Shown here: positions 4,387-48,283 of the stretch, piece after piece
Position numbering within the stretch: the stretch's first letter is position 1
Layout of the letters: every line of letters begins with the position of its first letter
Assembly: GCA_003427395.1 (NCBI GenBank)
Contig: BFEA01000019.1
Location: 4,463,737-4,516,983, forward strand
Length of the DNA: 53,247 bases
DNA from: Chara braunii
Lineage: Eukaryota > Plantae > Charophyceae
Direction: 5' to 3'
Notes under the pieces: model-generated
Database searches by the model: none
The model's input: only the letters and a program-made list of their open reading frames with translations
What the model was told of the DNA's origin: nothing
Translations under genes and position numbers: made by a program

Positions 4387-6380
4387 TTGGGTACTCATGC
4401 TCAAGGACAAGACGTGTGTGCGACATCTTCCCCGTCCGACAGCGACGACTTGTCGTCTTCAAGTGGTTCTTCACGAGATTCGGCGAGCGAGTTCAACATA
4501 GAGGTATTGGACCCTCTCACGTTCGAGGATTTCTCATGGCTTCCTCTCCCGACCACGGGCCGTTTGTTGGGACCGCAATGCGCAGCATTATGCGCTCATC
4601 TTCACACGTATCTATCTTTCTATGCACCAACAACTTCGCCGACGGAGGACGAAGTTGTGTTGGGGGACATCCATGCATATGTTACCAAGGTGGCCCGCGA
4701 GTTTCACAAGCAGCGGTACGATGACAGCAATGCACCGCTCCTCTATGTCCGCATCCAAGTTGGGCAAGCGTCTTGCAGCGCTTTGCTGGATAGCGGCGCG
4801 TCTCGCAATTTCATGAGCCAAGCCTGTATGCAAAGGGCTGGCCTTGGCGCACAAGTTAGGAGGAAGGCAAACCCGGCGGCGATTAAGTTGGCAGACGGAA
4901 GGACACAACAACTTATCGACCGCTACATCAAGGCCGCATCGGTATATTTCGCACCTCATGCATGGGAACCGGTGACGCTCGACATTTTGGACATGAACTT
5001 CAACATTATTTTGGGAATGCCTTGGCTTGCAAGTGCGGATCACACAGTCAACTTCCACCGGCGGACTCTTACCGTTCGGGACGCCTTCGACGCCGAAGTG
5101 CCGTGTACTATTCCTCTTCTTCACTCTTCGATTCAGTGCCAAGTGGTGACGACCAAGTCATTCCGGGCTACTTGCGCTTACTAGCAGCCCGACGAGATAG
5201 GCCTATGCTTCCTACGGATCGTCGCGGTAGCCGACTCTTCCCCCATGGACTTGTCTTCAGACCCCTGTGTGGTATGGTTGCTTGACGAGTTCACCTACAT
5301 CTTCGAGTCACCTACCGGTGTGGTGCCGGATTGGCCAATCTCTCACGAGATCATTCTTGAGGCTGGTGCCGTGCCGCCGAAAGGTTGCATTTACCTTATG
5401 AGCGATCATGCCGAGGCACCGGAGTTGGCCGAGGTTCTTTACGATGGTTGGATTCTAACCAAGGGTTACCCCAAGGAAATCATCTGCGACCACTACACTC
5501 GGTTCATGTCTGATTTTTGGTTGGCACTCATCAAACGATGGGGCTCATCTCTCAAGCCGAGTTTGGCTCGCCACCCCCAAACGGATGCCCAAATGGAGAG
5601 GGCGCATCAGACCGCATAGGTTCTCCTTCACACTCTCATCCGTCCCGACCATAAGGATTGGGTTGAGCGGCTGCTGGATGTCGAGTTAGCATACAACTCG
5701 TCCATCCACCCGGCTATCGGGATGTGGCCCTGCGAGTCCGAGCACGGCTCCCCGGTCACTTATCCGTTGGACACAATCATTCCACGAGCGGTCGAGAGCG
5801 ACGGCCATCTTCTTGTCTTGCGTCGGATGCAAGAGCTACTTGTCAAGGCACGCGACCAGATGTCTAAGACGCAGCCACGCATGAGCCAACAGGCCAATCG
5901 CCAGCGTCTTCCTTGTCCATTCTGCGCCGACGACCTCGTTTGGGTTTCCGCTGCGGAGTTCAACCTTGAACAAGACATCTCTCGCAAGCTCCTCCCGAAA
6001 TGGATGGGGCCCTGGCCGATCGTGGCACCTGCTGGGGATGCACCCGAAGGACCTTCCTTCATCATTCAGGTGCTCGCCCACTTGCCCGTCTACCCGGTCT
6101 TTCATTGCTCCAAGTTGGCTCTTTACATGCCAGCGAAACATGACGATTTTTCTGGGCGACGATCGCAAGACCCACCCTCTATGGATGGTTTTCAAGAGGT
6201 CGGCATCTCCCAGCGACGATACGGCAACAGACCGACCAAATACTTGGTACCCTTTGCGTACTGCGCCCACAAAGCTGACCTGTGTGGAACTCCAAGCAAC
6301 AGCTCCAGATGTTCTCAGACGCTACGAATGCAAGATGCAAGGCAGGCCGGTATCTTCTGCTCCACACCACACCTGCGTCC
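4387..6380 (+). pseudogene. Degenerate pol: aspartic protease joined to integrase/chromodomain, RT and RNaseH missing
   Basis: ALLDSGASRNF and IILGMPWL (protease). Pre-RT PPKGCIYLMS joins directly to DHAEAPELAEVLY...GYPKEIICD...HPQTDAQMERAHQ. GPY/F-type LLPKWMGPWPIV. In-frame stops at 5182-5184 and 5617-5619. Confidence 0.88.
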
Positions 6381-6388
6381 AGGGGGGG
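6381..6388 (+). promoter_or_regulatory. Polypurine tract of element A
   Basis: AGGGGGGG immediately before TGTTACATG. Confidence 0.8.
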
Positions 6389-7007
6389 TGTTACATGCTG
6401 CGCCTGCAAAGAGGGCCATTTTTAGGCCCTGTGTCGTTTCAGCCTGAAAGCCTGAAAACAAGGCCTATATGCCCTGTGTCGTTTCAGCCTGAAAGCCTGA
6501 AAACAAGGGCCTACAGGCCCTGTGTCGTTTCAGCCTAGAAAGGGCACTCCAGGCCCTGAGTCTTTTCAGCCTGAAACGGAGGGCCATTTTCAGGCCCTCA
6601 TAAGATCGACCTGCCCTGAAACTTAGGCACCAGACTAGGGTTTGAGCACAGGCCATTTTGGGCCTGTTTTCAAGACAACCTTTGTTTGAACTTCAACGCC
6701 AGGGTCTGGCACATTTTGGCATTGGCAAGAGCGGGCTCCTGGACGGGCCAGCACTATATAAGACTGGCCTGCCCTGAGGTAGTCTTCAGGATTCGGCAGC
6801 AGCACTCTGGAGGAGCGCTGCAGTAGTAGTAGTAGTAGCGTTAGCAGTAGTCTTCAGCGCTGGGCGCTATTAGGAGCTAGACTAGCACTGCAGAGAGATA
6901 GAGATTGGGCGGAGGCCAGGGAGATTCACGTGCAGCGCCATAGCTCCAGCTCGTCGCCGAGGTACCTGCAGCACAGCGCCATCTTCACAGGTTAGTACGT
7001 GGCACAT

Positions 7008-19640: not shown

Positions 19641-20779
19641 TGCAAGGGGGTTGTGTGTTGTGTGTGAGTCCTGGCCATAGACACTGCTGTCTCTTGATGG
19701 GGACGGGGGAAGCAGATGGGAGGTGACGCCGCTGCCAAATGCTGTGTCTTTGCGTTAGCCCCCCCCCTCCTCCCCCCGTGGCCCCACCCTACTCCCTGAC
19801 CGCTACTGATTAGGGCGAGGGCCAACATGCATCACCTTGATTATTGTGCAGGTAGCTATGCGTGCAGGGGTCCCCTGTAGAGGCTTAGGAGTAGTGGTAG
19901 GTAGGTAGTGCAAGGTAGAAAATGAAAAAAGGAAAATCCAGCAAATTGCATGCCAAACCTTGTCAAAGTCAGCATTGCTCACTGCGTTACGCTGGGGAAT
20001 TTGATGATGATGACAATTAAGGTGGGTGAAATACGTAGCCTGAGACCTGACAGTGTAAGGATGACATTGATTGACTAAATGTGGCCGTAAGGGTTATCAT
20101 GCCGATAACCATGATGATGGCGATGATGTCTGATGAATGTGCAAATGAACTTGATGATGACATGGCGCACAATAATTTTGAAACGTCTGTGACAACACTG
20201 ACAACTGATCAAAGTGAACTATGGACCGTGAATGATGATTTGGTAATTATTGTATCAGAATCTACCATGATGACGATCAAACGACCAGGTAACAACAGCA
20301 AATTTCAGAACTGCCATTGGATCAGACACTGCTGCCATGAATCTAAGTGCTGTAATAATTCGACCATTGAATATCTGTGTGTCATTCTTGTGCAGGGGCA
20401 ATGCTAAAATTATCTGCCTGCATCTTTCCGATTTAAACGGATGTCCCGAAGGACACAGAGGTTCTATGTAAAAGGAGCTGTATTCAGAAACCCCAAGCCT
20501 CCCCTTCTCCCTTCCCCCCCCCCCCCCCCCCCCCCCACACACCACCACCACCACCACTGCTACCAAAGAAAAGGAAACAAAAAGAAAAGATAAAGAGGGT
20601 ATAAAACAGGCATTTTGTTGCCAGAGTGGTACTTCTTTGAAGTTCTTTCCACTTTTTCAATATTAAAAAGGAAGATTGGTTGTGCAAAGCAATTCCTTTT
20701 GTGGCAGTGGAATGCCATTGTGCTCAGCTCCTACTCTGTAATTTGCCTCTCTGGTTCGATTTTGTCTTCTTTTGTTCAG

Positions 20780-21229
20780 TCTGCAGGTCCAAGATGGCCC
20801 GAGCAATCTGACGAACTCCTTGGTTTAATCGTGGACTCTCTACGAACTCTGGACAGTGTTGTTACACAGGGGTGTCCAGAGCCTAGGCGGAGGCCCCAGT
20901 CAGCACAAAAGATTGCTCTTGTTCTTCAAGCGGCGCCATCTCACCTTCACCAGGACCTGATCGGGCTCGTACCAAAGCTGGTGGATGCAGCCGAGCACCC
21001 AATTGCCGCTCAGGCGTTGCTAGAGCGGCTGAGAGTACCAGATGCAGATCCTGCAACGCGCATGCCTGTCCTTGCATCTCTTAGTCAGCTGGAGGTTGGT
21101 CCTGACGTGTGGGATCACGTCTTCCGTAGTGGACTGGAAACAATGGTTGCGGTGGACGACGATTTGCTTGCAACTGCTGTAAGCATTGTTTTCAAGGCTG
21201 CGGCCGAAGTCAGGGCACTACCTCTAGCG
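20780..21229 (+). CDS. MATH/TRAF-like protein, internal exon
   Basis: Polypyrimidine tract, cAG acceptor and GCG|GTGAGT donor; 150 codons. WPEQSDELLGLIVDSLRTLD...QGCPEPRRRPQSAQKIALVL...LVPKLVDAAEHP. Confidence 0.92.
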
Positions 21230-24200
21230 GTGAGTATTCCCCACTTGCGGACTTTTCCGCTCGTTAATGTGGCCCTAATAGTTTGACAGTGGCTATCTGA
21301 CTGTCGCATCTGATTTTGTCCAATGTTTTGCTGTCCTGTTTCAGCATCTAAATTTGCAGACACCGTGCAACGCATGGCTGTGGAACCCTGAGACGTATGT
21401 GCAGGAGATGAGCACACAAAGTTCTGCTCTGGGCAGTCATGGAAAAATGGCGGCAGCTTCAACATCCAGCTGCGGGTGACTTATTAAAGTCAGATTTGGG
21501 CACTCAGCCGTGTATAACTGGCACTTCCCCGGCCATCTTGTTGCGTCAACTTATAATCACGGGGCCATTTGAAAGGGGTTTGCGTCGCTCACAGTATCCA
21601 GAGAAGATTGACGGACGGAAAAAACAATGACCGTATTCTCTATTCTGAATTTTCTTGTCCATTCTAGAGCACATAGCTGACAGTATTGAGCGGATTGACC
21701 TCCTTGCTTGATAAAAAAACAATGACCCTACTCGATTGGCCTGTCCATTCAAGAGCAATTTATGCTGGATACAATAGAGCGCAAACAACCTGTGTCTCGA
21801 ATATGCCGGTTACAAAGTGTGGTGCACCTTCTCGGGCCGCAGTAGAATCCGGTGGGCCCGCTGATCAGCTCCAAATGTTAGGATCGGGTCTGCAAAACCC
21901 CTGTGGAGGGTAACGAGAGCGAGACGGTCGGAGTCAGCGTTTGGGCGCGAAGTTAGTGGGGGATGGTTGGAATGAGTCTGTGGAACCCATTGGTCGGAAG
22001 CTGGGAACCCATTGGTAGTGCATTTCATTTCGTACGTTTGATGATATGGAATATGTTTGCGTGCAGCGCATAGCGTAACCTCTGTTAGCAACAGTTGGAT
22101 CTGTGTGATCGTATGCTCGCTGCTAGTGTGTTGTCTTGAGTGTCCTAATGAAGCATTATCATGTACTCATCCTTGCTGCTAATTCATGCACTCATCCTTG
22201 CTGCTAATGTGTGCCTTAAGGGCTGTAATGAGGCGTTGTTTGTATTCGTCACCTTCATCTGCACATCACCCCTCGTTTACGGCTTGTTGTCCCTGTAGCA
22301 TACCTAGCCTTGACTCATCATACTGTCAGTTGCATTGCGTTATCGTTTTGTTACAAGTGTTGCAGTGAGCCATCATGATGTTGTACGCATCCAGTTGTCA
22401 TGTCAAACCGTTGAATCATCATCGTGGTGTTGCGCGCGTTGACTTATTGATCCCCTTGATCGACACATTAGCTCGCTGTATGGCTTGGTATTCGTCGTTG
22501 GCATGCCTAAGTAGCTATGAGCAGGTTTCCGTCTCTGTTTCTTTGGCTTCTCAGTCCAGACAACGCACAAGGAATGCATCCAAGAAGAAGCTCTGGGCAG
22601 CATGTGGCTATATTGTGTGAATGATCCCTCGTCCAGGAACCTTGTGTCTGCACCGTGAACACTGCCTGCTTTCTGCTACTCCTAACAGATGAACTCGCTC
22701 TTGGAAATGGTAATGAACCAGAAAGGCAGCCAGGTAGAGAACTCGAGTGTGGGGAGGTTGTCCTACCTACCGCCAGGACAATGGCTGTCAACGTGGTGCA
22801 AATACGACATCTGTGAGTGACTCAGTCACAGCCATCAGAGGGGATTGTTCAAAGCCAACCTCGACAGCCCGTTGAGGATCAGCGACTGCATTCTCTGCAG
22901 CTGAATAACCTCTGTGTGATGATGTAGGTGACGTGCGGTTAGCATATGAGCGCCATCACCTCTGCCAGGACAAATTTGATGGAAGGTTGAGGCTACCCTC
23001 TGCTTGGATAATCCAGGTGACCCTTCTCTCTGTACTCACCTTGGCCATCCTTTTATTGCATGCCCTTTATTTCCGGAAGGGCTTGATCCACACTTTATGT
23101 TGGAGTGTCATAGCCATGCCTGTCTTTCTGGCCTGTGGAAGTCTTGTTGCGTGCCTCACCCGTCTCTGGCACAATCAGGAACAATGCGTATTATTTTGAC
23201 ATTCGGATGAACTGTTTTTCACACAGCATTGCATCGTGCTTGTCCCATCTTGAGTCGTGGGCACCTAGCATTCCCTCGGTATTTCCCATTCATGTTCCAC
23301 GGTGAGCTCATCCGTTGATGCCAGCTATGATGTTGCAACCTGAGCGCAGGTGTGGCCATTATGATGGTTAAGTGGATGTACGATCATCTCCTGCTGCGGA
23401 GCCTTGTGCTCGGTTGATAATGCCGGGGTTGTTTCTGTGATTTTGGCTCCATGCGTGTGTATGTTCGTGCATGTCCGTGCATGTGGGTCCTCTCATTGTT
23501 TTTTTTTTTTTTTTTGTGGGCGCTGTCTGTCTGTCTGCTGTTTCATTTTCAACCGCTTTCCTCTTGCTCCTACTATGGATCTAGTTTCTATTTCAATGGC
23601 TGATGGCCCCAAGTGGTAGCAGTGACACAGCAACTGTTTTCATACAGCAATTTGTATAATGGCGCCAAGTTTGTGAGCTGTGCATATGTTTGAACTTTGA
23701 ACCTTTGTTCTATTTTGCATAATGGCGTTATCGTGATTTCATCACCGTGCCGTCCTAACAAAGGTACAGTCATCATCGTGCCGTCCAAATCGGCTCTAGT
23801 CCATGTCTGGCTGGCCACATGTTTTGAAGAAGAACCTGCACATATGCATGCGCATATGCCTGCACGTATCTCTGATTGTTTAGCACTTGAAAAGTGGCAT
23901 GCCGTCCACTGCAGTGCATCTGAAACTGTTCACAGGCCTGGCAAACACTTTTGAGCTGTGCTGGCCCCCTAGGAACCAGGGTGGCTTGGAGACGACCACT
24001 GTGCAGGCACCTCTGGATGAAATGTACACGCTGTGCACACCACTTGTTGAATGCGCGATAAAGCCCTTCTACAGCATAGTTGTTTTTCGTCCGTGGGATA
24101 TGGCCATGTTTGTTTGGCTTGTTGTACTGAGTCTCAACATGTTCGTTCCTTTGTTGTCGCAGATTCGTACGAGGTCGCCGGTCCTGTTTGGTTAGAATGT

Positions 24201-27960: not shown

Positions 27961-28823
27961 GTGGCTGTTCAGTTTTCCTCTGCTTCCCAGAACTGCTCCC
28001 TGGGATGCATACAACAGGAAGTCAAGGTAGCTGGTGGATGAAGTGGTGGTGGTATGGGAAATAATTGCCACTGCATAGTGATGTTAAGCAGCCAAGGGAG
28101 TCGGGAAGGGGCTTTCAAGTCTGTCTGATTTAATGAGTTTTAATCACGAGGAGCCAAAGGTGGTGTATTCTCTGTTGTGGGGAGACACACCTAGGTCACT
28201 GGGAATTGAACATCCTGTGAGCATCTAGTGAAGTCTGGACGGAAGCAGTGGGGCGCGCTGTTGATCAGCGCAACGTAAGCCTTGGCTGCCTGCAGTCAGA
28301 GGCCTGTTGTCACTCTACTTTTTTGATGCCCTGCACTCGATGGCACACAGCAGGTCCCACTTGTCTAGCGGAATCAAAGCCAGGGCCTGCTTTAGAAACT
28401 CGTCGTTTGTTTTTTCAAGAATTACATGGACACCGATAAAGAGAAGCGTGAAGTGGGATGCAACGGAGGATAGACCCGAGTCCTGCAGGCGCAGCACATT
28501 ATGAGCTTCTGTCCCCATGTATCCTCTTCCGTCCAGTACCCTCTACTGATAATGTTTCAGTGAAATGAGTTCAAACAAGTTGTACTTTTATGTCGATTTC
28601 AAAATGGAAAACCGAATGTGGGTTACTAGTACTTATTACCAAGATGTGCGGATTTTCTGGTCAAAACGGTTGGCATGCGTTGCTTGATTTTCAGTGCAAC
28701 TGTCAAAGTTGTGCGGAATTTTTTTTTTTCTTTTTTTCTTTTCAACTCGTGTTGTCCGTTGATGTTGAGTTGGACGAGTATGTGAGTATCCAAAGACCAA
28801 CATGTCAATTTGCTTTCATGCAG

Positions 28824-29828
28824 GCAAGAGCTGTTCGGGAAAAATTGAAAAAGCAAGGCCCGGCAGTATCCCCACGTGTTTTGGAAATGGTAAGGATGCT
28901 GGTTTGCACACGGCTGGATGTCGCTGAAGCTCTCCTGCAAGATATAGATTCAGACTGTGAGCGGAGCGAAGATGAGATTGTGGCGACCACAGCACCTCTG
29001 GTGTTTGGCGACAGAGCAGATGATATCGGTGCCAGTGTGAGCGAGCTTTCGCAGGTGGCAGCAGAGCGGGCGGCAGCAGCTGCTGCAGTGTGCTGGCGTG
29101 TTGCAGATGTGGACATGTTAGTGGAAATGCTGACGGTTCCTCAGCTGAGGGTGGATGCGCAGCGCGTCTTTGAACGGGCCATTGCTCGTGGCGCGTTTGG
29201 GGAGCAGTCGGTGGTCATGGTCCTGGAAAGAAGACAGTCCCAAAGACTGATAATGGACCCAAGAGTTGGTGGAACAACTGCTGGCGGCGGCATGGGACTT
29301 GGTGTAGGAGTGAGCATTGGCTTGCCTGTTGGGGTGATGGACAACAGCGTTCCAATCGTCTCGTCTGGCAGCGAAGAAGACGACGACTTCCCCGTCGTTC
29401 TTGGCCTCGCTGAAGCTCTTGCTGCATCGCAAGATGTTAGAGTGAGAGAATTCGTCAGCACCTTATATGCTGTTATGTTCAAAGTGTATGGCGATGAGGG
29501 ATGTCGGGAGAGGATGCTCCGTGGACTGGTTGAGAGGGCAACAAGCAGTTCGAGTGGGCCGTCGGAAGTGGAATTGGGGATGGACATTCTGACCTTCCTT
29601 GTGAGGGAGGAGGAGGGGACGGCGCGGCCAGTCCTCAGCATGATGCGCGAAACAGCTGAAGTTGCTCATTCCGACCGGTCTGCTCTTTGGCAGCAGCTAC
29701 GTGCAACCGAGGAGGAACTCAATCGGATGAGGGTGGACAGGCAGGCTGATATCACACGCCTTAACCGGGAGAAAGGGGCACTTCAGTCGAAGGTTGGGGA
29801 GCTTGAAGCAGCACAAGCACGGGCAAAG
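28824..29828 (+). CDS. MATH/TRAF-like protein, internal exon
   Basis: cAG acceptor and AAG|GTAAGT donor; 335 codons. DVDMLVEMLTVP...FERAIARGAF...VVMVLERR...VLGLAEALA...RERMLRGLVERAT...RPVLSMMRE...DRSALWQQL. Confidence 0.93.
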
Positions 29829-30527
29829 GTAAGTGCTGCGTTGTACTGCATCGCTTTTCGAACATGCAATTCTCCTTTGGACTCAGGTGGTGTGCTTATG
29901 TTGTGTGATGCTATCTACATTTTCAACCTGGTTGTGCTTGGTGCTGCCCCAATTTCGTGTAATGCTATGGCCCCGACGTAGTTGTGTTTGGTGCCACACC
30001 GAGTTGGTCTACTGCTAATGCTATAGCTCTTCCCGTCTGTCTTCGTCGGTTTTGGGGGCAGTCAAGGAGCGAGGAGTTTGTGGAATGAACTTGGTTGATC
30101 TGTCCATCTACCACATTAGTCTTGCAGGGTGGCCGTTGGGAATGGGGCACCCGTCCAAAATTTCCATTCAAAGAACATTGTGAGGAGGGGGAATACCTCA
30201 AGGGAGTGACTGAACCGTTCCATTCTAGGCATCTGACGAGTCACGAGAAACGTGTAGGTTGGAAAACTACAAAAAGCAAGGCGGCACATGCTTAGCTTTA
30301 GAAACGATGAACAAGTCAACTCTCCATTGGTTCCTGCTTGGTTGCTACTGCTGTGAAAAAAAAAAATGAAGATTCTGAAGCCTCCTCCAATTCATCAGGT
30401 GTTAAAAAAGCGGAGCAGGAAAGCAAGGGTGAATGGAGGCAGGGTTCTGTGTCATGAAATCATAAATATTGTGCCTCACTATCTCCTGTGTTTGTCTCCA
30501 GCCTCCGTGTTGGTCTACCAGTTGGTC

Positions 30528-35196: not shown

Positions 35197-35297
35197 GTCC
35201 TTCGGGAGGGACATCTGTTAAAATTGGAACGATACAGAGAAGGAAGATTAGCATGGTCCCTGCGCAAGGATTAAAAAAAGAAAAAAAAAAGAAAAAC
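35197..35297 (+). pseudogene. U6: 3'-truncated, polyadenylated U6 snRNA retrocopy
   Basis: GTCC-TTCGGG..GGACATCTGTTAAAATTGGAACGATACAGAGA(AGGA)AGATTAGCATGGTCCCTGCGCAAGGAT, then an A-rich tail. ACAGAGA box at 35234-35240. The U6 3' third is absent. Confidence 0.92.
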
Positions 35298-35583
35298 CTA
35301 GGCTACAAGCCAGGCCGCCCGGGTCCCGGGTGGCCAGCCCGTGCACGGACCAGAGAAAGGTCCCAGCAAAAAAAAAAAAAAAAAAGAAACTAAAAAAAAA
35401 TCCGAACAAAAACTATGTTATGCTGAAAAATAAACTGAACAACTTTGCCTCAGGGTCATATCGAAATTATTTACCAAATTTAAAATAAAATAATAAAATA
35501 TGTATATATATTTTTTGTTTGTTTGTTTGTTTGTTTTTTTGGCCCGGCCGGGCAAGTGACCCCGGGCCACTCTGGTAGCCTAG
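35298..35583. mobile_element. Non-autonomous hAT-type element (286 bp) inserted in the U6 retrocopy tail
   Basis: CTAGGCTAC...GTAGCCTAG; TSD AGAAAAAC/AAAAAAAC (7/8 match); CCCGGG subterminal motifs. Confidence 0.8.
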
Positions 35584-38614: not shown

Positions 38615-39997
38615 CCCCTCTTTTTCTTTTTTTTTTTCACTTAATCCCCATTTTTTTAAGTGCCTGATGATTGCTGTCTATCGGAATTGTGGCGTTCTGC
38701 GAGGACGCTCTATGTCAGAATGTTTGTCCTTTAGATAAGCTGCACTGTGTCATCCCGCAAACCCTCTTGCAGTCGCTTCACCAGCCATATCTGATCTTCT
38801 CTGCTTTCTCCGGTGCATTGCCTCTCACCAACCTTTCACGACCGTCCAAAATGCTTTCCGTCTTTTTGTCCTTCACTCTCCCTTTTCTCGCCCCCGGCCT
38901 GTGTATGTCCTCCCAATTTGGATAATCTTTTCTTTCGATTTGTTGCTTTACTGAAATACGTCCACGTCTTTTCATGTTGCGCTCACCATCTGTGCTCTGC
39001 TGTCGCTTGGTGATCATTCAGAACTGAATCTGAAGTCGTGTCCTCTTCTTCTCCTTTCTTCTTTTTCGTTTTTTTTTTTTTGAACTCTTCAGTGTGTTCA
39101 TACCAGGCAAATGCAACTTTCCCCCNTTCACGTATATACTCCTCTACTCTCGTTTTGCTTCTGATGGACAGCTCAGGGCCAAGCTATTCTGTGAGGGATT
39201 GCTGTGACAGATGTATCTGGCCTTCCTTTTGGCCACATACCCCTGAAAAACAACTACCCACAAGAAGAGTGTCAAATTGGGAATCACAAGAAGGTTATCA
39301 ATAAAGGGTCTACACTGCAGATGTATCTGACCTTCCTTTTGGCCATATACCCCTGTTGTAGGTAAGCATTTTTTTTTTTTTTCCTGTGATGTGCTAGGCG
39401 GGTCGCATGGGTTGGATATTTTATGCGATGGAATGGAAAAGGAGAAAAGCTGGAGGGAGCTTCGATTTTGTGAAAGAATGACAAGAAGAGAGAGAGAGGA
39501 TAATCCACACAAAATCTGCACTTGGACACTTTTTGAACGCGGTGCATCCGAATCTTACCAGCATAACTATCCGTTAATTGTCCACGCATGCGTATTCACT
39601 CAGAAATTCCAGCCCTTTTCTTTTTTTTTTTTCCAACCTTTAGGCTTTAATCATAGTTATATAATGTAGTAATAGTCCTTGTGTGCGTGCGTGATTCAGA
39701 ATTTCATAAGCAATCTGTGGTGATTGTGATAGGCATATTCTCCACTAGAGAACACTCTACATGCATTTGGCTGCTTTATGGACCCGATACGTATAAAATG
39801 TCGAACTTTTCTGAATGCATCTTGTTCAGAAAGCATCCAAAATGCATGTGGAGTGTTGTGCTGTGGAGTGAGGCCCATAGAATCATTGACTGATCAGTTT
39901 TTAGGGTTTTTGTAACGTTTAACAAGTTTTTATATTTTTGTGCATGGCAACAAGGCGACCAGAATGGCCCGGGACCACATGCCCGGCTGGGGCGATA

Positions 39998-40264
39998 TGA
40001 AACTCCGACGAAACAGTTTGTCACAGCCCCTCGTTTGTTGTCCTCTTCTCTCTCTCTGCCTACGGTTTTACCGGGCAGTTCTGTTTGTGACGGTATATAC
40101 ATACATATATATATATATACACACATACCTCTTCTCTCTCTCTCTGCTTATGGTTTACCGGGCAGTTCTGTTTGTGATGATATATATATCGTTAAACAGA
40201 GCTGCCCGGTAAACCGAAAGCAGAGAGGGAGGGAGAAGAGGACAGCAAATGAGGGGCTGTGACA
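39998..40264 (+). mobile_element. Penelope/retrozyme-like repeat: hammerhead 3' half, tandem and inverted copies around (TA)n
   Basis: TGAAACTCCGAC-GAAA-CAGTTT-GTC, then TGTCCTCTTCTCTC...GGGCAGTTCTGTTTGTGACG. A partial tandem copy at 40128-40179 and an inverted copy at 40190-40264. Confidence 0.55.
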
Positions 40265-40670
40265 TCGGCAATACCTGTGCCTCCCCTCAGGTCCCCTCCC
40301 CTTCGAACATCGGCAGCCTGCCTTCTTCGCTGACGTCAAACACTTCGTCACTCGGCTTCCCTGCGGCCAGCTACGGACGGCGCTGGTTACAGCCGTCACA
40401 TCTGCTCCTTTGTTCTTGAAACATGACGACGGGGAAGGGGCAACCGCCTGTTGAGGCATCATCATAGAACGGACCAGCCTCAGGTCGGTCAGGGTTATTT
40501 AACTCTTGCGATTTCATCCTGATTCCAAATCTTTCAGGTCTGGTTATGTACTAGCAGATCTTGGGCGTAGGATTCAGCAACATGGGGCTTGGTAGCCGAC
40601 AGAAGTGCGAAAGATTTTAACAACTGTGTAGCAGACAGAGCTGCAAAAGAATGTCGCACTGCTCATCGGA

Positions 40671-40975
40671 CAGATCTAGTGTCACTGCCTGTTGGATGGC
40701 ACTACGGTAGTCATACCACACCGCTTCTCTGCTGGCGGGATATTGCGCAATGCTGCAACCCCTTTGTTTGCTGGAGTTTTGTGCAGGGTATGGACTCTAA
40801 CAAGGGTACACAGTTGGGGCGTACCAGATCTAGTGTCACTGCCAGTTGGATTGTACTAGTCATACCACACCGCTTCTCTGTTGAGGGATATTGCACAACG
40901 CCGCGACCCCTTCGTTTGCTGGAGTTTTGTGCAGGGTTTGACTCTAACAAGGGTACACAGTTGGGGTGTACCAAA
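40671..40975 (+). repeat. About 155-bp tandem duplication
   Basis: CAGATCTAGTGTCACTGCC...AACAAGGGTACACAGTTGGGG(C/T)GTACCA occurs twice. Confidence 0.9.
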
Positions 40976-41408
40976 CCATTCTGAAGTGGCTGAATAGGGG
41001 GGTTTAATTTTTTTAACAGGTGCCTTTGAATTGAGCCTCTCCACCTGTACAGGCCCTGGATCAACCTGTGTCGAAAACCTGGTTGCCTTGTGGCGCTTAG
41101 CTGAAAAGCGGAGTCCTTTGAAGAATCTGGCGGCTTCAACCGCCAGCACTTCCCATCCTTTCTTTGAAATTGTTCCCGCGTAAGCTGCTGCCTGCCCCGT
41201 TGAAATGGTGGCTTGGACCGCCGCCGCCGCCACCACCACATAGTTTTTGTTTTTTGTTCCCTCTCCCCTTCCCCCCGCGGCTAAATAAAACAGGTCCTCG
41301 TGGTCCTTGCTCCATATCCATTCTGGAGACCATCAGTCAGTTCGGTTCCTTTTTGTCCCCCTCTCCCCAACACCCCNNNNNNNNNNNNNNNNNNNNNNNN
41401 NNNNNNNN

Positions 41409-41439
<31 letters not shown>

Positions 41440-41997
41440 TACCTCCCAAAAAGCAAAAAGAGGTCCTTATGGTCCTTTGGCTGCGTGCGTAATAGTCCAT
41501 GTCCACTCTGGGGAGCACAAGTCCGTTTCTTCTTTTTCTTTTTTTTTTCCCTGAAAAAGGAGGTCCTTATGGTCCCGGACCTGTAATTGCCCGTACCCAT
41601 TCTGGGGAGCATCGGCCGGTCTTTTTTCTTTTTTTCCTTTTTTTTTCTTCAGAGAAAGGCTAATTCTTTTGAGCCAGACTATTTCAATCACCTGTCGCAT
41701 GTGACAGGGAGGTCTTTCAGGTCTTTTCATATTAGCACAGTAGAATTACGAGGAGCCCATAGCAGCCAGCCCGTGTTCAAGCGTCGAGCGAGGGAACATG
41801 TGGGGACTCCACCTGACCTGCAGGTGGCCGATACCAACCAGGGATCAGCTGGTAGCATCAGGACCGATTTTCTTCAATGGGCCAGTCGCCTAGCCTCCCC
41901 TCCGGTCCCCTTCCCGTACAAAAATCAGAATTGTCTGCCCAGTGCGGAGTGGGGGGACCAGCGGGCTGTCTGTAGGTGGGGCACACCAAGCATGCCC

Positions 41998-42753
41998 AGG
42001 AAGGTACATGAGACAAGTGAGGATTGAACCCATGGCCTCCGGAATGCCACTTCCGTGCCTTACCAACTGAGCCAGGCCGCTGGATCCTTTTCCACCAGCG
42101 AAGTCATCAAGGAAGGTACATGAGGCCAATGAGGATTGAACCCATGACCTTCTGAATGCCCACTTCCATGCCTCGGCAACTGAACTAAGCGGCTGGATCC
42201 TTTTTCCACCAGCAAAGCCATCGAGGAAGGTACGTGAGGCCAGTGGGGATTGAACCCATGGCCTTCTGAATGCCCACTTCTGCGCCTTGTCAACTGAGCA
42301 CAGGGGCTGGATGCTTTGCCACCAGCAAAGCCATCGAGGAAGGTACGTGAAGCCAGCGGGGATTGAGCCTGTGACCTCCTGAATGCCACTTGCATGCCTT
42401 ACGGCTCTTACCAACTGACCCAGGCCAGTGGATCCCTTCTTTTAGCCGCAAAGTCGTCAAGGTGCAGCAACACCCGCGCTGCCTTCCATTTGGCCGACGG
42501 AATCCTGATCGGCATCGGTTGTGCCACTCGCATGGAGGCTCGACCGTCCAGCTTGCCATTGGGGATTGAGCCCATGACCTCCTAGATGCCACTTCCATGC
42601 CTTACGGTCCTTAGCAACTGACCCAGGCCAGTGGATCCTTTCTTTTAGCAAAGTCGTCAAGGTGCAACAACACCCGCGCTGCCTTCCATTTGGCCGATGG
42701 AATCCTGATCGGCATCGATTGCGCCGCTCGCATGGAGGCTTGACCGTCCAGCT
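41998..42753 (-). repeat. Tandem array of five tRNA-derived (SINE-head-like) cassettes
   Basis: Minus-strand A-box-like TGGCTCAGTTGG and B-box GGTTCAATCC/GGCTCAATCC at tRNA spacing. Units of about 115 bp, plus two of about 200 bp. Confidence 0.8.
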
Positions 42754-42769
42754 CAGACCACCAGATCAT

Positions 42770-42884
42770 TTCTGGACAATCTGGTGTACCCAAGATAAAT
42801 TCTGGACAATGTGGTGTACCCAAGATAAATTCTGGACAATGTGGTGTACCCAAGATAAATTCTGGACAATGTGGTGTACCCAAG
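42770..42884. repeat. 30-bp minisatellite, about 4 units
   Basis: TTCTGGACAATGTGGTGTACCCAAGATAAA in tandem. Confidence 0.95.
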
Positions 42885-44174
42885 TCCCTCCTTATGTGAC
42901 CACTGAGTGATGTTTTAAAAGATATGTTGCACCCAACTCCCTCTTATGCGGTTGTTTGGTCTGTCGAACAAAGTAAGCCTAGGCCACTCCTTGACTTCCA
43001 CAGCCAAGCAACAAAAACTGTTCCGTCGAAACCCTTCCAGCTTTGGCGGGTTTAATTTTGACAGGCTCGCCAGATCACAAAGCGGTTGAGGACACTGTGA
43101 GAACGGGAAAGCTTGCATGGGGAGTTTAGACGCACGACGAAATAAGGAATTTTCCCCTGTGGTCAGTGGGGCCATTTTCAACCAGAAGTATGAGGGCCAG
43201 CCAATTTTCTGCAACGCACTGGCAGGTGTGAGCATGACGAATGCTTCCTTTTTGGCGGGATGCACCACCCGGGACGCTTCTCCCCCTAAAAAACAAACAT
43301 GCTGTCAAAGCAACAGTCACATCATGGACCCATTTTTCGCCTGGAAGCTTTTGAAGCAACACGCGGCAGTCGGATGCATCCTTTGAGACGCAGTGCCTTG
43401 ACGGGGGGGCGTCGTATAACATTTTTGATCTCGGAGTTGCGGAACAGAAACCAAACTGACACTCGCGAGAATGGGAGCTAGGCTGAAGAAGAGTTGCTGT
43501 CTTTCATTGGAAAACAACAACAACAACAACAACAGAGGGTTTCATCATGACTCTCATGCACAAGGAAGGTGTGTCGGCACAACTTTTGTCAAGGAAGGTG
43601 TGTCGGCACAACTGTGTCTCCATTCTTTTTTTGATTCTTTTAAAACGACAACTTTAGCGTTACTCGGACTTACTCCGTCTCATTTCCAGTTCCTCCTAGT
43701 GTTGCTATTTGCAAGTGGCAGCATGCTCGTCGTAGCTGTTCTGCTTGGCGTCAAGCAATATCGAGCCAGCCGTGCAGACGTGGCATGCCGACCAACTCCA
43801 AACATGCTCTCATGAACATTGGCGGGTACGCCGCCGGGTAGGCAGGCTAGAAGAAGTCATCTGATATTTTCTTGCTTTTACAATTTCGCGCAACGAGGGG
43901 ATACTCCCACAGGGACGTGATGACCATAAACCACCACAAGTACACGGCCCCAGCCTTGCAGTCCAATACTTGTCGCCCCAAGAAAACGAGGCCGAAACAT
44001 GGAATGGTAAACGCTATGCCAGCCGTTGATACATCCGATCGGTGGGCGCTTTTTTTCTCCTTTCGCGCCTCCAGAATTTGAGGCGTCTGGCCTCGTTTCT
44101 GTGATGCAGAATCCGAAGAGTAGAGATCAAGATCAGCGACCTTTCAATGCTGGTCCTGCATGAGTGTGCTACAT

Positions 44175-44655
44175 GCCAGAAGAGAGCTTGTGAAAGTAAG
44201 TAGACAATGGATCCGCGAGTGAGCAATTACTGTAGACAATGGATCCGCGAGTGAGCTCATGTAGAAGCACCCACCGCTGGATCTGTTATCTTAGCGGAAA
44301 TTCTCTTAAAAATTAAAATTGGGAACTTAAGCTTGTGATATCAAGAATCGCTATCTGTGCAAGCATTTTACGATTCAATAGTACTTCGTGACTTTTTAAT
44401 GAAAAAATCAACTTATTATAGGACAAATCCTGTTCTCGTACTGCAGCAAGTACTTTGTAGTACATTACACTAACCTACATGATGGTAGAGGCCACTTGCC
44501 AGAAGAGAGCTTGTGAAAGTAAGTAGACAACTTGAATGGATCAGCGAGTGAGCAATTAGTGTAGTATATTACACTAACGTACATGATGGTAGAGGCCACT
44601 TGGCAGAAGAGAGCTTGTGAAAGTGAGTAGACAATGGAACCGCGAGTGAGCAACT
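44175..44655 (+). repeat. Three related direct repeats
   Basis: CAGAAGAGAGCTTGTGAAAGT(A/G)AGTAGACAA...GCGAGTGAGCAA at about 44177, 44500 and 44604. Confidence 0.85.
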
Positions 44656-45623
44656 TTAATCGCGGTCATCTTGGCCCGAGGGGCGACTACGTATAACACT
44701 CACTATTTCTTTTCTTCGAGCCTGAAGCGGACACTAAGGTAGAGTCCTTGGTATGTGCGAAGTTGCAAGCCAACAAAATACTTCCCGTTATAAATGTGTG
44801 CACAGTATCCGACCAATTTATGCAAAATACGTTACCAAATTTTCCAAATTTACTAACAGAGATTCTACATTACGAAATTTTCCAACTCTTTCCTACTCTG
44901 GCGAGCCGCACGCGAACGTTTTTTTTTAACAGAAGCATCTACAAATGGACCTTTCCATCAGGTGGCCATGTACTGGAGCTTTAAATTCCAAAAATTGGAC
45001 AGGGCTGCATTTTTAGGGTCACATTGGAGAGACCCGCTCTACCCAAATGTACATCGGGTGGCCCTTTTGTCAGCAGCCTGTGGAGCCGCGGGAGGACCCT
45101 TTTTGAGCCCACCTCCAGAGGAGGTCTCAAATTACCTTTTTTTTATGTTTTTTCTTTCTCTACGAGGTATTTCAAGAAATTTGTGCATGAGCAAAACGTC
45201 CGTGCGTGTTAATTCAGCGTTGGAAAAGAAGAAGAAGAAAAAAGTCTATATATTTTTGGGTGTAAGAAGTGTGACTATGTGCAGTTCCTGTGTCCTTGGT
45301 GGACAGAGTCTACCCATGGGACCACACGAGTCGAACATTGTCCTATGTACCAAACGCCTCTCAAATATTTGCGACTTCAAGTGAAATTAGGTCCCCGAGG
45401 GAGTATGCGCTGAGAGGATGGACCAACCGAAGATTGTCGGCAATCAGCGGGAAACCAAAGTTGTAATGAAATTGAATCTGAAATATTTCAGGTCGAGATC
45501 GAGTTAATAATCGCCTTCCCTCCAGGTCGAAATTAAGTTGATTATTTGGTCTGGAATCGTCGGTTATCTCGACCTGGAGGGAAGGCGTGCTCCCTCAGCA
45601 ACAGCAGGCGAATGGGAGGATGT

Positions 45624-45674
<51 letters not shown>

Positions 45675-45894
45675 CGCGCGCGCGTGTGGGCACGCCCTTG
45701 ACCGAAATCCCTGGCACCCAAAAAAAAGAAAAAGCAAATGTAGCGTAGGCTTGGAGTTCTACCGCCTCTGATTTGGTGCTGCAGAGTCCATCAGTATCAT
45801 GTGGTACAGGCATTGAGTCCAACGGCAGAGTATGCTTCGATGTGAGAGTGGTTATCCATTGTGTTCATCGTCATTATCTCGGAGTTGTTAGCTG

Positions 45895-45929
<35 letters not shown>

Positions 45930-45932
<3 letters not shown>

Positions 45933-46023
45933 TGAGTCGGTGAACTCCAACGAAACAGTTTGCTGTCCTCTTCTCCCTCTTGGCCTACGGTTGACCGGGC
46001 GGTTCTGTCTGACGATATATATA
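45930..46023 (+). ncRNA. Hammerhead-ribozyme-like core (5'-clipped) with the same downstream repeat
   Basis: TGATGA-GTCGG-tgaact-CCAAC-GAAA-CAG-tttg-CTGTC, followed by the repeat also seen at 40038 and 48193. Flanked by (GT)n and (TA)n. Confidence 0.6.
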
Positions 46024-47557
46024 GATGTGTCTAAGTATTTATCTGTTTATAACATTCTTAAACGATGCGTGAGTATCTTGTGATATGCATTTGAGGCACT
46101 ACGAGACTGTTGGGCCCAAGCTGGGCATCGAGAACAGGGTTGTGGGCACCTGTTTTGTTTTTACCACTTTGGTTTGTCTTTATTTTGTTGGACGTAGCCG
46201 GCAGTTTTGCACTCCCTTTTTGTTTTGCGTGCACACTGGTGTGTGTGTCGCTCGCTCTGTCGTCTTTTTTTTTTTTTTTTGCATGCGCACTGGTATGAGT
46301 TTTGCGATCTTTTGTTCTGTTGTACCAAGACATATGAAATGTAAGGATCTAACTTCGTTCCAATATGAGCACACACCTGGGTGATGTGGGTGAGACGAGT
46401 ACATGTTTCGGTCTTTTCGTTTGTGCCCGCAGCTATATACGTAAGGTTGGCAGTTGGTGTTTTTTTTTGCTCTGCTGTTTTGTGCGTTCGTTGTCATGGA
46501 AGCAGGCGTGGCGCTTTATCTTTTTGCCCTCTGTTTGTATTCCAATTGACGAATACGAGTTGTTGAACAACAAGTGCAAACCTGGCTTTGTTTTTTTTTT
46601 CCCCTTTTTTTTTCTTTTTTTCTTTGTTTTTTGCACCCCTTCGCGACGTCTTTTAAAATTGGAGCGTCACAGAAAACGATAAACATGGGCCCGCACGTGC
46701 ATGTGCGCAAAATGATAATAATAATAATAAAAAAGAATCAAATGGATGAAAGGAAGGTACACCGTACACTTTTTTTTTGATTTTTTCTTTTTTATTTCCG
46801 AAGGCCGGTTGTAGGTGGTAGGAGTGGGGACTATCCATGGTGCAGTCAGTCTGGGGTAAACAGGTCGTCGTATCTCGCTAACGTCATGCCCCTATATACC
46901 CACACAACTCCTTGAGGACTCGCCGTAGAGTACATTTGTAACTGTTAAGTGGACAGGTCATGAGACTCAGTTCAAATTGTCGTGGAATCAAATGAGTAGA
47001 ATGATATCAGGCCGTGCCCCTTTTTTTTTGGGTAGTACAATTAGGTAATATAAAAATATATATTTAAAAAACGAAAAATTAAAAACAATAACATATGTCT
47101 TCATTCTAAGATATATGAAACTTGGATTTTAAGTATATCTAACACATTTTGATAGAAAATCAATCTATGGTTCACATTCAGTATTAAGTATGAATTATTG
47201 ATAGGACATATGTCAATTTCCTAACATTATAGTATTTATAGCATAATCGAATATAGAATTCTAGGAGTTTATGTTACTTAAACAAAAAAGAACCCCGAGA
47301 AAGAAAACGTTGCGGATTAGCCGTTGAGCACACTTTTTAAGCTGTGACTGTAAGTCTCCGGGTCATGAGTTTGAATGGCGGTGGAATCAAATGAGTAGTC
47401 TAATATCAGGGGTTACCTTTTTTTTTTTTTGCTGGGGGGGGGGAGGAAGGGGGAGGGGGGGAGGGAGGGACTTCAAAAAAGGAAAAAATACTGTGCAAGC
47501 AGACTCCATGTTTGCCTGTGGTTTTCTATTTTTAGCCCCGACAGATGTATGATGTTC

Positions 47558-47607
47558 AGACTCCTGATGAGTCGGTGAAACTCCAACGGAACTGTCTGTT
47601 AGAGACC
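47558..47607 (+). ncRNA. Degenerate hammerhead-ribozyme-like core
   Basis: CTGATGA-GTCGG-tgaaact-CCAAC-GGAA-C-tgtct-GTT; GAAA is mutated and stem I is weak. Confidence 0.5.
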
Positions 47608-48127
47608 CTCGTGTGGTGCTTTCTTTTGCTCACAGGACCCTCTGCCTACAACTCACAGGACACTTCTCCTTGGCCATGTTTAATAGACACTTTTACACCG
47701 TGCGCCTCTTTTTTCCCTTTTGTGTTTCAAACTTCACACATTCCACAGTGTGCCTCTGTTTTTGCTGGTCTTGATTCGACTTTGTGGTCTGTCCTTGTTC
47801 CAAGTCTACACGCCCACCCGGGACGTCTCAGGGATGAGGTCCTAGTACCAAGGAGGAGGATTGGATGAAGCTCCTTGTTCACATTCTGGATGTGTTTAAT
47901 GGCATTAATGCAGAGTTGCAGAATCTCACTCCGATCTCGATTTTTGCTGCCCCTCGGCACAAACACGTCTAGATTTGGGGTGATCAACCCAATCGTCCAT
48001 GCTAGCGGGACCTCGCCCCTGAGGCGTCCTGCTCCTGGTGTGTGTATCACATATTGTGAGGGACCGGACCGGCTGAAACAGGAGTTGTCCCTTTTTTTGT
48101 AAATAAGAGTCATCAGAGTCTTTTCTC

Positions 48128-48192
<65 letters not shown>

Positions 48193-48200
<8 letters not shown>

Positions 48201-48243
48201 TCTCTCTCTCTGCCTACGGTTTAGCGGGCAGTTCTGTTTGTGA

Positions 48244-48246
<3 letters not shown>
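48193..48246 (+). repeat. Fragment of the hammerhead-associated repeat embedded in (TA)n
   Basis: TGTCCTCTTCTCTCTCTCTGCCTACGGTTTAGCGGGCAGTTCTGTTTGTGACG between two long (TA)n tracts. Confidence 0.85.

Positions 48247-48283
<37 letters not shown>

Follow-up and report, generated by a model that had tools for sequence, protein, structure and literature searches.

The window analysed here, a 53,247-nt stretch of Chara braunii DNA (GenBank assembly GCA_003427395.1, contig BFEA01000019.1, positions 4,463,737 to 4,516,983), contains six related short segments, designated A, A2, Ainv, B, C, and E. Probably, all six are dead remains of a single C. braunii retroelement family that carried a hammerhead, each copied from the 3' end of the element and truncated on its 5' side. 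They form one family with a common 3' end, variable 5' ends, and junctions with microsatellites, and they contain the core boxes of a hammerhead ribozyme. A more specific reading, which we put forward tentatively, is that the fragments derive from a retroposon that would be short, non-coding, and very abundant in its streptophyte algal host, would have carried a type III hammerhead in the style of viroids and retrozymes, and would have been inserted into (TA)n by reverse transcription of the kind performed by Penelope-like elements (PLEs).

The copies were defined by direct reading, self-BLAST, a repeat finder, multiple alignment, and an nhmmer profile of the family. The profile matched the six segments with E values of 1e-15 to 1e-30 and found no seventh copy anywhere in the 53 kb. 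The copies and their microsatellite junctions are as follows (microsatellites without strand).

39998-40092, plus strand: copy A (nhmmer E 1.5e-30)
40094-40128: (TA)n/(ATAC)n, 3' junction of A and 5' junction of A2 (TRF 40094-40119 and 40097-40128)
40128-40179, plus strand: copy A2, tail only (nhmmer E 1.8e-15)
40180-40189: (AT)5, separating A2 and Ainv at their 3' ends (read from the sequence)
40190-40264, minus strand: copy Ainv, repeat-finder inverted repeats I17 and I18 (nhmmer E 3.1e-22)
45896-45931: (TG)18, 5' junction of copy B (TRF)
45930-46014, plus strand: copy B (nhmmer E 1.4e-26)
about 47564-47673, plus strand: copy C (nhmmer match 47551-47673, E 2.5e-19)
48129-48193: (TA)32.5, 5' side of copy E (TRF)
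48194-48245, plus strand: copy E, tail only, 52 nt (nhmmer E 1.9e-17)
48246-48280: (AT)17.5, 3' side of copy E (TRF)

An earlier note on this DNA had described three partial hammerhead-like segments (39998-40022, 45930-45967, and 47564-47600) and a repeat tail seen five times, and had joined them into one dispersed family tied to microsatellites. All three segments are present at these places. The tails (~52-75 nt, at 40038, 40128, 40190 inverted, 45962, and 48193) are real repeats, with self-BLAST E values of 1e-10 to 1e-21 and significant nhmmer matches; a 32-nt tail pattern has zero chance matches expected from shuffles, and an 18-nt pattern matches copy A exactly and copy B with three mismatches, with 0.04 matches expected by chance. 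Every tail adjoins (TA)n, which supports the tie to microsatellites.

Tail identity among A, A2, and E is 93-98% (A2 versus A 95%, E versus A 98%), while Ainv and B are 74-81% identical to the remaining tails. Copy C is a more distant relative, and its similarity is lost ~50 nt past the ribozyme-like part. CpG decay was dropped as the chief source of the tail differences, with only one of 20 differences being CpG-type; the change of CCGAC to CCAAC in the ribozyme-like part of B and C is also CpG-type. A candidate for a seventh copy, at 48098-48112 on the minus strand (AGACTCTGATGACTC), adjoins (TA)32 and resembles AGACTCCTGATGAGTC of copy C; it was rejected because its nhmmer match is not significant. 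The window has an assembly gap at 41377-41408 (a run of N) beside a 31-nt poly-C (TRF 41409-41439), in a low-complexity tandem-repeat stretch. The gap lies 1.1 kb past Ainv and 4.5 kb ahead of B and crosses no copy, junction, or relevant reading frame. As it lies between the A cluster and B, C, and E, only the distance between these groups is uncertain.

A, A2, Ainv, B, and E have a common 3' end, ...ACCGGGCAGTTCTGTTTGTGACG (..GTTTGTGACG; variants GATG, CTGACG, and TTTAACG), which is joined directly to (TA)n. Copy C loses homology to the tail after GCCTACAA and has no (TA)n at its end. At the 5' side, the six copies begin at six positions. Copy A begins inside the helix II loop of the hammerhead-like part and has a complete tail ending in GTGACG. 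Copy A2 begins at CCTCTTC and ends in GTGATG. Copy Ainv, on the minus strand, starts with TGTCACAGCC (TGTC), 3-4 nt ahead of the cut site proposed for a type I ribozyme, and reads through to ...GTTTAACG. Copy B begins at U4 of the CUGAUGA box, where it is fused to (TG)18, and ends in CTGACG followed by (AT)4; a 17-nt deletion between its two GTTTG repeats removes TCACAGCCCCTCGTTTG (TC-ACAGCC...), including the proposed GUC site. The 5' end of copy C lies at or before C3 of the CUGAUGA box. Copy E begins at GTCCTC (GTCCTCTTC), ends in GTGACG, and is set exactly between (TA)32.5 and (AT)17.5, that is, inside a (TA)n of ~50 units as defined by TRF. Solo, head-to-tail, and tail-to-tail arrangements all occur: A and A2 lie head-to-tail across (TA)n/(ATAC)n, and A2 and Ainv lie 3' end to 3' end across (AT)5.

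The fixed 3' end, the scattered 5' ends, and the junctions in simple repeats point to target-primed reverse transcription with frequent early stops. Specifically, an RNA ending in ...GUUUGUGACG(AU)n would anneal to a nicked (TA)n target, either strand of which could be used because (TA)n is self-complementary, and would be reverse-transcribed from its 3' end. Early stops would leave one common 3' end, many 5' ends, and occasional head-to-tail or tail-to-tail copies. The most likely source of the enzyme is a PLE. The ancestral RNA would have carried a hammerhead core (CUGAUGA, helix II GUCGG/CCGAC with a UGAAACU loop, and GAAA) ~75 nt from its 3' end.

Parts of this core are preserved in three of the copies. 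Copy A (39998-40022) reads TGAAACT-CCGAC-GAAAC-AGTTTGTC, followed by ACAGCC, and thus comprises the helix II loop and 3' strand, GAAAC, and AGUUUGUC. Copy B (45930-45967) reads TGATGA-GTCGG-TGAACT-CCAAC-GAAAC-AGTTTG; C3 is missing, the helix II loop is 1 nt short, and helix II has one C.A mismatch. Copy C (47564-47600) reads CTGATGA-GTCGG-TGAAACT-CCAAC-GGAAC-TGTCTGTT. Its CTGATGA and helix II 5' strand are intact, and the remainder is mutated (CCGAC to CCAAC, GAAA to GGAA, and GTC to GTT), so that helix II has one C.A mismatch in C as well. CUGAUGA is thus intact only in C and GAAA only in A and B, and both boxes are complete in no single copy.

We built a composite from pieces of the window only, joining C 47564-47582 to A 40005-40034; the joining is legitimate because A and B overlap by ~23 nt. 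The composite was compared with a hammerhead descriptor (CUGANGA; helix II of 4-6 bp with a loop of 4-8 nt; GAAA; helix III of 1-3 bp with a loop of 2-5 nt; UH). It passes, with a 5-bp helix II (GUCGG/CCGAC) and a 7-nt loop (UGAAACU), and with a helix III of 2 bp beyond A15.1:U16.1 and a 3-nt loop. In 40 Mb of random sequence with the dinucleotide content of the window, the descriptor matches two sites (0.05 per Mb). In addition, metagenome contigs L008 and L014 carry a natural hammerhead whose 29-nt core (CUGAUGA through GAAAC) has exactly the sequence of the composite core; L008, the one that was scored, gives a Hammerhead_3 match of 53.6 bits, above the Rfam gathering score. Because the composite passes a rare descriptor and its core matches a natural hammerhead, the ancestral element very probably carried a hammerhead. 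The presence of both core segments and stem II in the consensus, as claimed in the earlier note, is thereby supported for the ancestral sequence. In the two marine contigs, the hammerhead with the Chara-identical core (L008:8190-8244, minus strand, and L014:3461-3489, plus strand; type III as scored in L008) lies just upstream of an open reading frame (ORF).

Several results weigh against the reading of the six segments as remains of a hammerhead-bearing retroelement. The ribozyme is present only as a composite of two copies. The Rfam hammerhead models (clan CL00010) have no match at E<=10 in the 39-49 kb region or in searches of 91 and 111 nt around A and C, and a search of the whole window at gathering thresholds gave no hammerhead match either; with the same models, only one of nine control loci passed, which indicates limited sensitivity. 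The descriptor has no match on either strand of the real window, and no copy holds a complete ribozyme, as the earlier note had recognised. Target-site duplications cannot be read within the microsatellite junctions. The tail hairpin CUGCC..GGCAG shows neither covariation nor unusual stability (z-scores of -0.03 to -1.5). Finally, 30 ORFs (the window's ten longest, and twenty from the 39-49 kb region) were compared with Pfam, and none matched a reverse transcriptase (RT) or a GIY-YIG endonuclease; the only matches, located elsewhere, were to Gypsy protease/SH3 and FancD2-like profiles.

Some of these points suit the explanation that an unrelated repeat of the short interspersed nuclear element (SINE) kind resembles a hammerhead by chance and never functioned as one: no copy matches the Rfam models, helix I is unseen, and 0.28 occurrences per window are expected for the generic pattern CTGATGA-N(4-30)-GAAAC. 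This explanation is nevertheless very improbable, given that the full descriptor has a null rate of only 0.05 per Mb, that copy B combines both core boxes with a 5-bp helix II and copy C does so in mutated form, that a bona fide hammerhead has exactly the same 29-nt core, and that hammerhead-bearing PLEs have been published for C. braunii (PMC8557442). The least probable explanation that we weighed is a foldback DNA transposon, or one of the miniature inverted-repeat transposable element type, in which the tails would be inverted arms and the TA dinucleotide the target. A2 and Ainv do form an 88-nt near-perfect hairpin around (AT)5, and the flanks are TA-rich. However, A, B, and E are single arms without an inverted partner, and the arms vary in length, with six 5' end positions and a fixed 3' end. 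Moreover, the arms of A2 and Ainv meet at their conserved 3' ends, whereas terminal inverted repeats would agree at their outer ends. The A2/Ainv hairpin (40140-40227) scores 57.6 bits with the mir-4433 model (gathering score 77) and 33 bits with mir-8, and it is a likely source of false microRNA calls in annotation.

The topology of the ancestral hammerhead could be type I, with the cut after the GUC past GAAA, or type III, with the cut upstream of CUGAUGA; we lean slightly towards type III. The earlier note had read type I, which is not established: no helix I partner is seen in any copy, a mini helix III can arise by chance, and its loop is not palindromic. Specifically, the note had predicted GGCTGT directly ahead of CTGATGA. 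Copy C, the only copy with sequence at this place, has AGACTC instead, a weak negative. AGACTC pairs neither with ACAGCC of copy A nor with AGAGAC of copy C itself, and the flank of C may be DNA outside the element. The minimal stem III and the GUC triplet that the note had pointed to are present in copy A and the composite; in simulations, a short helix III and UH after GAAA arise by chance in 29% of trials with at least 1 bp and in 12% with at least 2 bp. At this chance rate, the presence of a mini helix III favours type I only 3-8-fold. The helix III stem-loop ACAGUUUGU (ACA/UGU, loop GUU) is not palindromic, and a dimer helix would need two G.U pairs and a U.U mismatch. Canonical type I hammerheads of eukaryotes have a palindromic helix III loop, which permits dimers (Cervera and de la Pena 2014, PMC4209133).

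In its most specific form, the competing reading takes the ribozyme for a type I hammerhead, canonical or minimal, from a PLE pseudo-long terminal repeat (pseudo-LTR) or a non-LTR retrozyme; the ribozyme would act as a dimer and cut after the GUC at 40022. Its helix III would consist of 2-3 bp (ACA/UGU) with a GUU loop, and its helix I of ACAGCC and a GGCUGU just before CUGAUGA. We regard this reading as doubtful. The composite does pass a type I descriptor, with 2 bp of helix III beyond A15.1:U16.1 and a GUC triplet, and two composites can pair through an extended 8-bp helix III around the central U.U (-23.2 kcal/mol for the dimer versus 2 x -9.5 for monomers). Ainv begins only 3-4 nt from the proposed cut, and type I is the topology of the PLE hammerheads described so far, among them those of the plant Selaginella (PMC4209133). 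However, Ainv starts ahead of GTC instead of behind it; the loop of helix III is unlike that of canonical type I; a mini helix III with UH is expected by chance in 12-29% of trials; and no helix I partner is seen, with AGACTC in copy C where GGCTGT, or GTCTCT for the sequence of C, would be required.

As for type III, no copy in the window extends far enough 5' to hold the upstream strand. A search of the window for the type III partner (CAAACTGTH followed by a hairpin) hit nothing except A and B in reverse complement and a single unrelated site, and a search for an antisense arm upstream of copy C found none.

Two further pairings involve the sequence around the proposed GUC. ACAGC, right after it, pairs across a 9-nt loop with GUUGU in copy A (40023-40041) and with GCUGU in Ainv (minus strand, 40242-40260). 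This hairpin is in the minimum-energy fold of both copies, with a G.U pair in one and a G-C pair in the other, and a type I helix I would have to compete with it. In the flank ahead of copy A (39985-39997, GGCTGGGGCGATA), GGCUG can pair with the CAGCC past GUC, probably by chance; this is probably not the GGCTGT-CTGATGA arrangement that the earlier note had predicted.

Hammerhead-bearing PLEs of C. braunii have already been published. Craig, Yushenova, Rodriguez, and Arkhipova (2021, PMC8557442) described three Chlamys-clade PLE types in this species, of which two carry canonical hammerheads, one of them described as a '3'-HHR'. According to the same study, PLEs are biased towards microsatellites and occur in partial tandems and as inverted copies that lie side by side and are truncated at the 5' end. 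Of the attribution to PLEs in the earlier note, the insertion signature stands (a common 3' end, 5' truncation, tandem and inverted copies, and (TA)n/(TG)n targets), while a linked RT or GIY-YIG ORF is missing. As the copies are short and have no linked ORF, a short non-coding passenger with the 3' end of a PLE is more likely than truncated ends of the PLE itself. In Chlamydomonas reinhardtii, non-autonomous PLE derivatives have the 3' ends of autonomous families (PMC8557442).

Compared by description, the window copies resemble the Chlamys-type/PLE-X elements of C. braunii (PMC8557442) in species, in a hammerhead near the 3' end, in heavy 5' truncation, in partial tandems and adjacent inverted copies, and in simple-repeat targets. 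Unlike these elements, the window copies have no RT, endonuclease, or gag-like ORF. The targets reported for Chlamys are (CA)n and (C)n, and those for Naiads are (TA)n (PMC8557442), compared with (TA)n and, once, (TG)n for the window copies. The MRC1-like, putatively non-autonomous Chlamys elements of C. reinhardtii (PMC8557442) are likewise short and non-coding and are inserted head-to-tail. They share their 3' end with an autonomous PLE, whereas such a partner is only putative for the window tails; no hammerhead has been reported for them, and they belong to another host lineage.

Similarity also extends to the metazoan non-LTR retrozymes and the minimal hammerheads of PLE pseudo-LTRs (PMC4209133; de la Pena et al. 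2020, PMC7229834; Li et al. 2026 preprint, 10.64898/2026.07.22.740005), which are short non-coding repeats with a hammerhead of weak helix III and with kinship to PLE ends. However, metazoan retrozymes are animal elements, usually in tandem arrays, in which two or more type I ribozymes delimit a circular RNA, whereas the window copies are dispersed truncated stubs in an alga. The window contains no pair of intact ribozymes. The plant LTR retrozymes (Cervera et al. 2016, PMC4918200) are, as the window family probably is, non-autonomous retroelements of the plant lineage with hammerheads. They possess LTRs, a primer-binding site, and a polypurine tract and are mobilised by Gypsy elements, whereas the window copies have no LTRs and their junctions indicate target-primed reverse transcription.

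Further copies were sought in public collections and in the literature. When metagenomes were scanned for the core, leaving its loop free, each of the 14 loci obtained was an unrelated prokaryotic or phage-like hammerhead. A viral scan for the tail (5 loci) and a prokaryotic genome scan for CCRACGAAACAGTTTGYC (41 loci) gave at most short chance matches to the family, and a literal sequence search in papers gave unrelated primer matches only. In the literature searched, Chara and hammerheads occur together only in Craig et al. 2021, where short hammerhead stubs in (TA)n are not described. One freshwater metagenome contig, which looks phage-like, has a hammerhead-like core at 4494-4522 and, downstream of it, 13 tRNA genes in ~3 kb (L007:4764-7860).

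The window documents cleanly how the family lands inside (TA)n and adds six dead copies of it from the 2-Gb-class Chara genome. The wider question is whether a hammerhead retroposon of the green lineage is driven by PLEs and with which ribozyme topology, which bears on the origin of plant and animal retrozymes. If true, the reading that combines type III with PLEs would link the ribozymes of plant retrozymes to PLE machinery, a combination not found in the literature searched.

The remaining features of the window are minor. A 38-nt direct repeat (39208-39245 and 39318-39355, 95% identical) may be another small repeat family or may be due to chance; its 11-mer GACAGATGTAT also occurs upstream of copy C (47550-47560). 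A tandem array at 41998-42753 has periods of 113-114 nt and 200 nt (TRF scores 513-662), and its units look tRNA-derived (GGATTGAACCC...), like an array of SINEs or RNA polymerase III cassettes. It is followed at 42763-42884 by a 30-nt tandem repeat (AGATAAATTCTGGACAATGTGGTGTACCCA) of four copies, 96% matching. A single N is present at 39126 in otherwise ordinary sequence.

Elsewhere, two U6 small nuclear RNA matches exceed the Rfam gathering score (35197-35305, plus strand, 64.6 bits; 20353-20454, minus strand, 47.9 bits) and mark the DNA as eukaryotic; the weaker of the two may be a retrocopy. A remnant of a Gypsy-type retrotransposon lies at 4387-6447 on the plus strand, with an RVP_2 aspartyl protease (E 5e-9) and a weak Tf2-1 SH3 match. 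Two plus-strand ORFs, at 20615-21286 and 28590-29981, match separate portions of the FancD2 profile weakly and below threshold (E 2e-4 and 4e-4, respectively) and may be exons of a FANCD2-like host gene.

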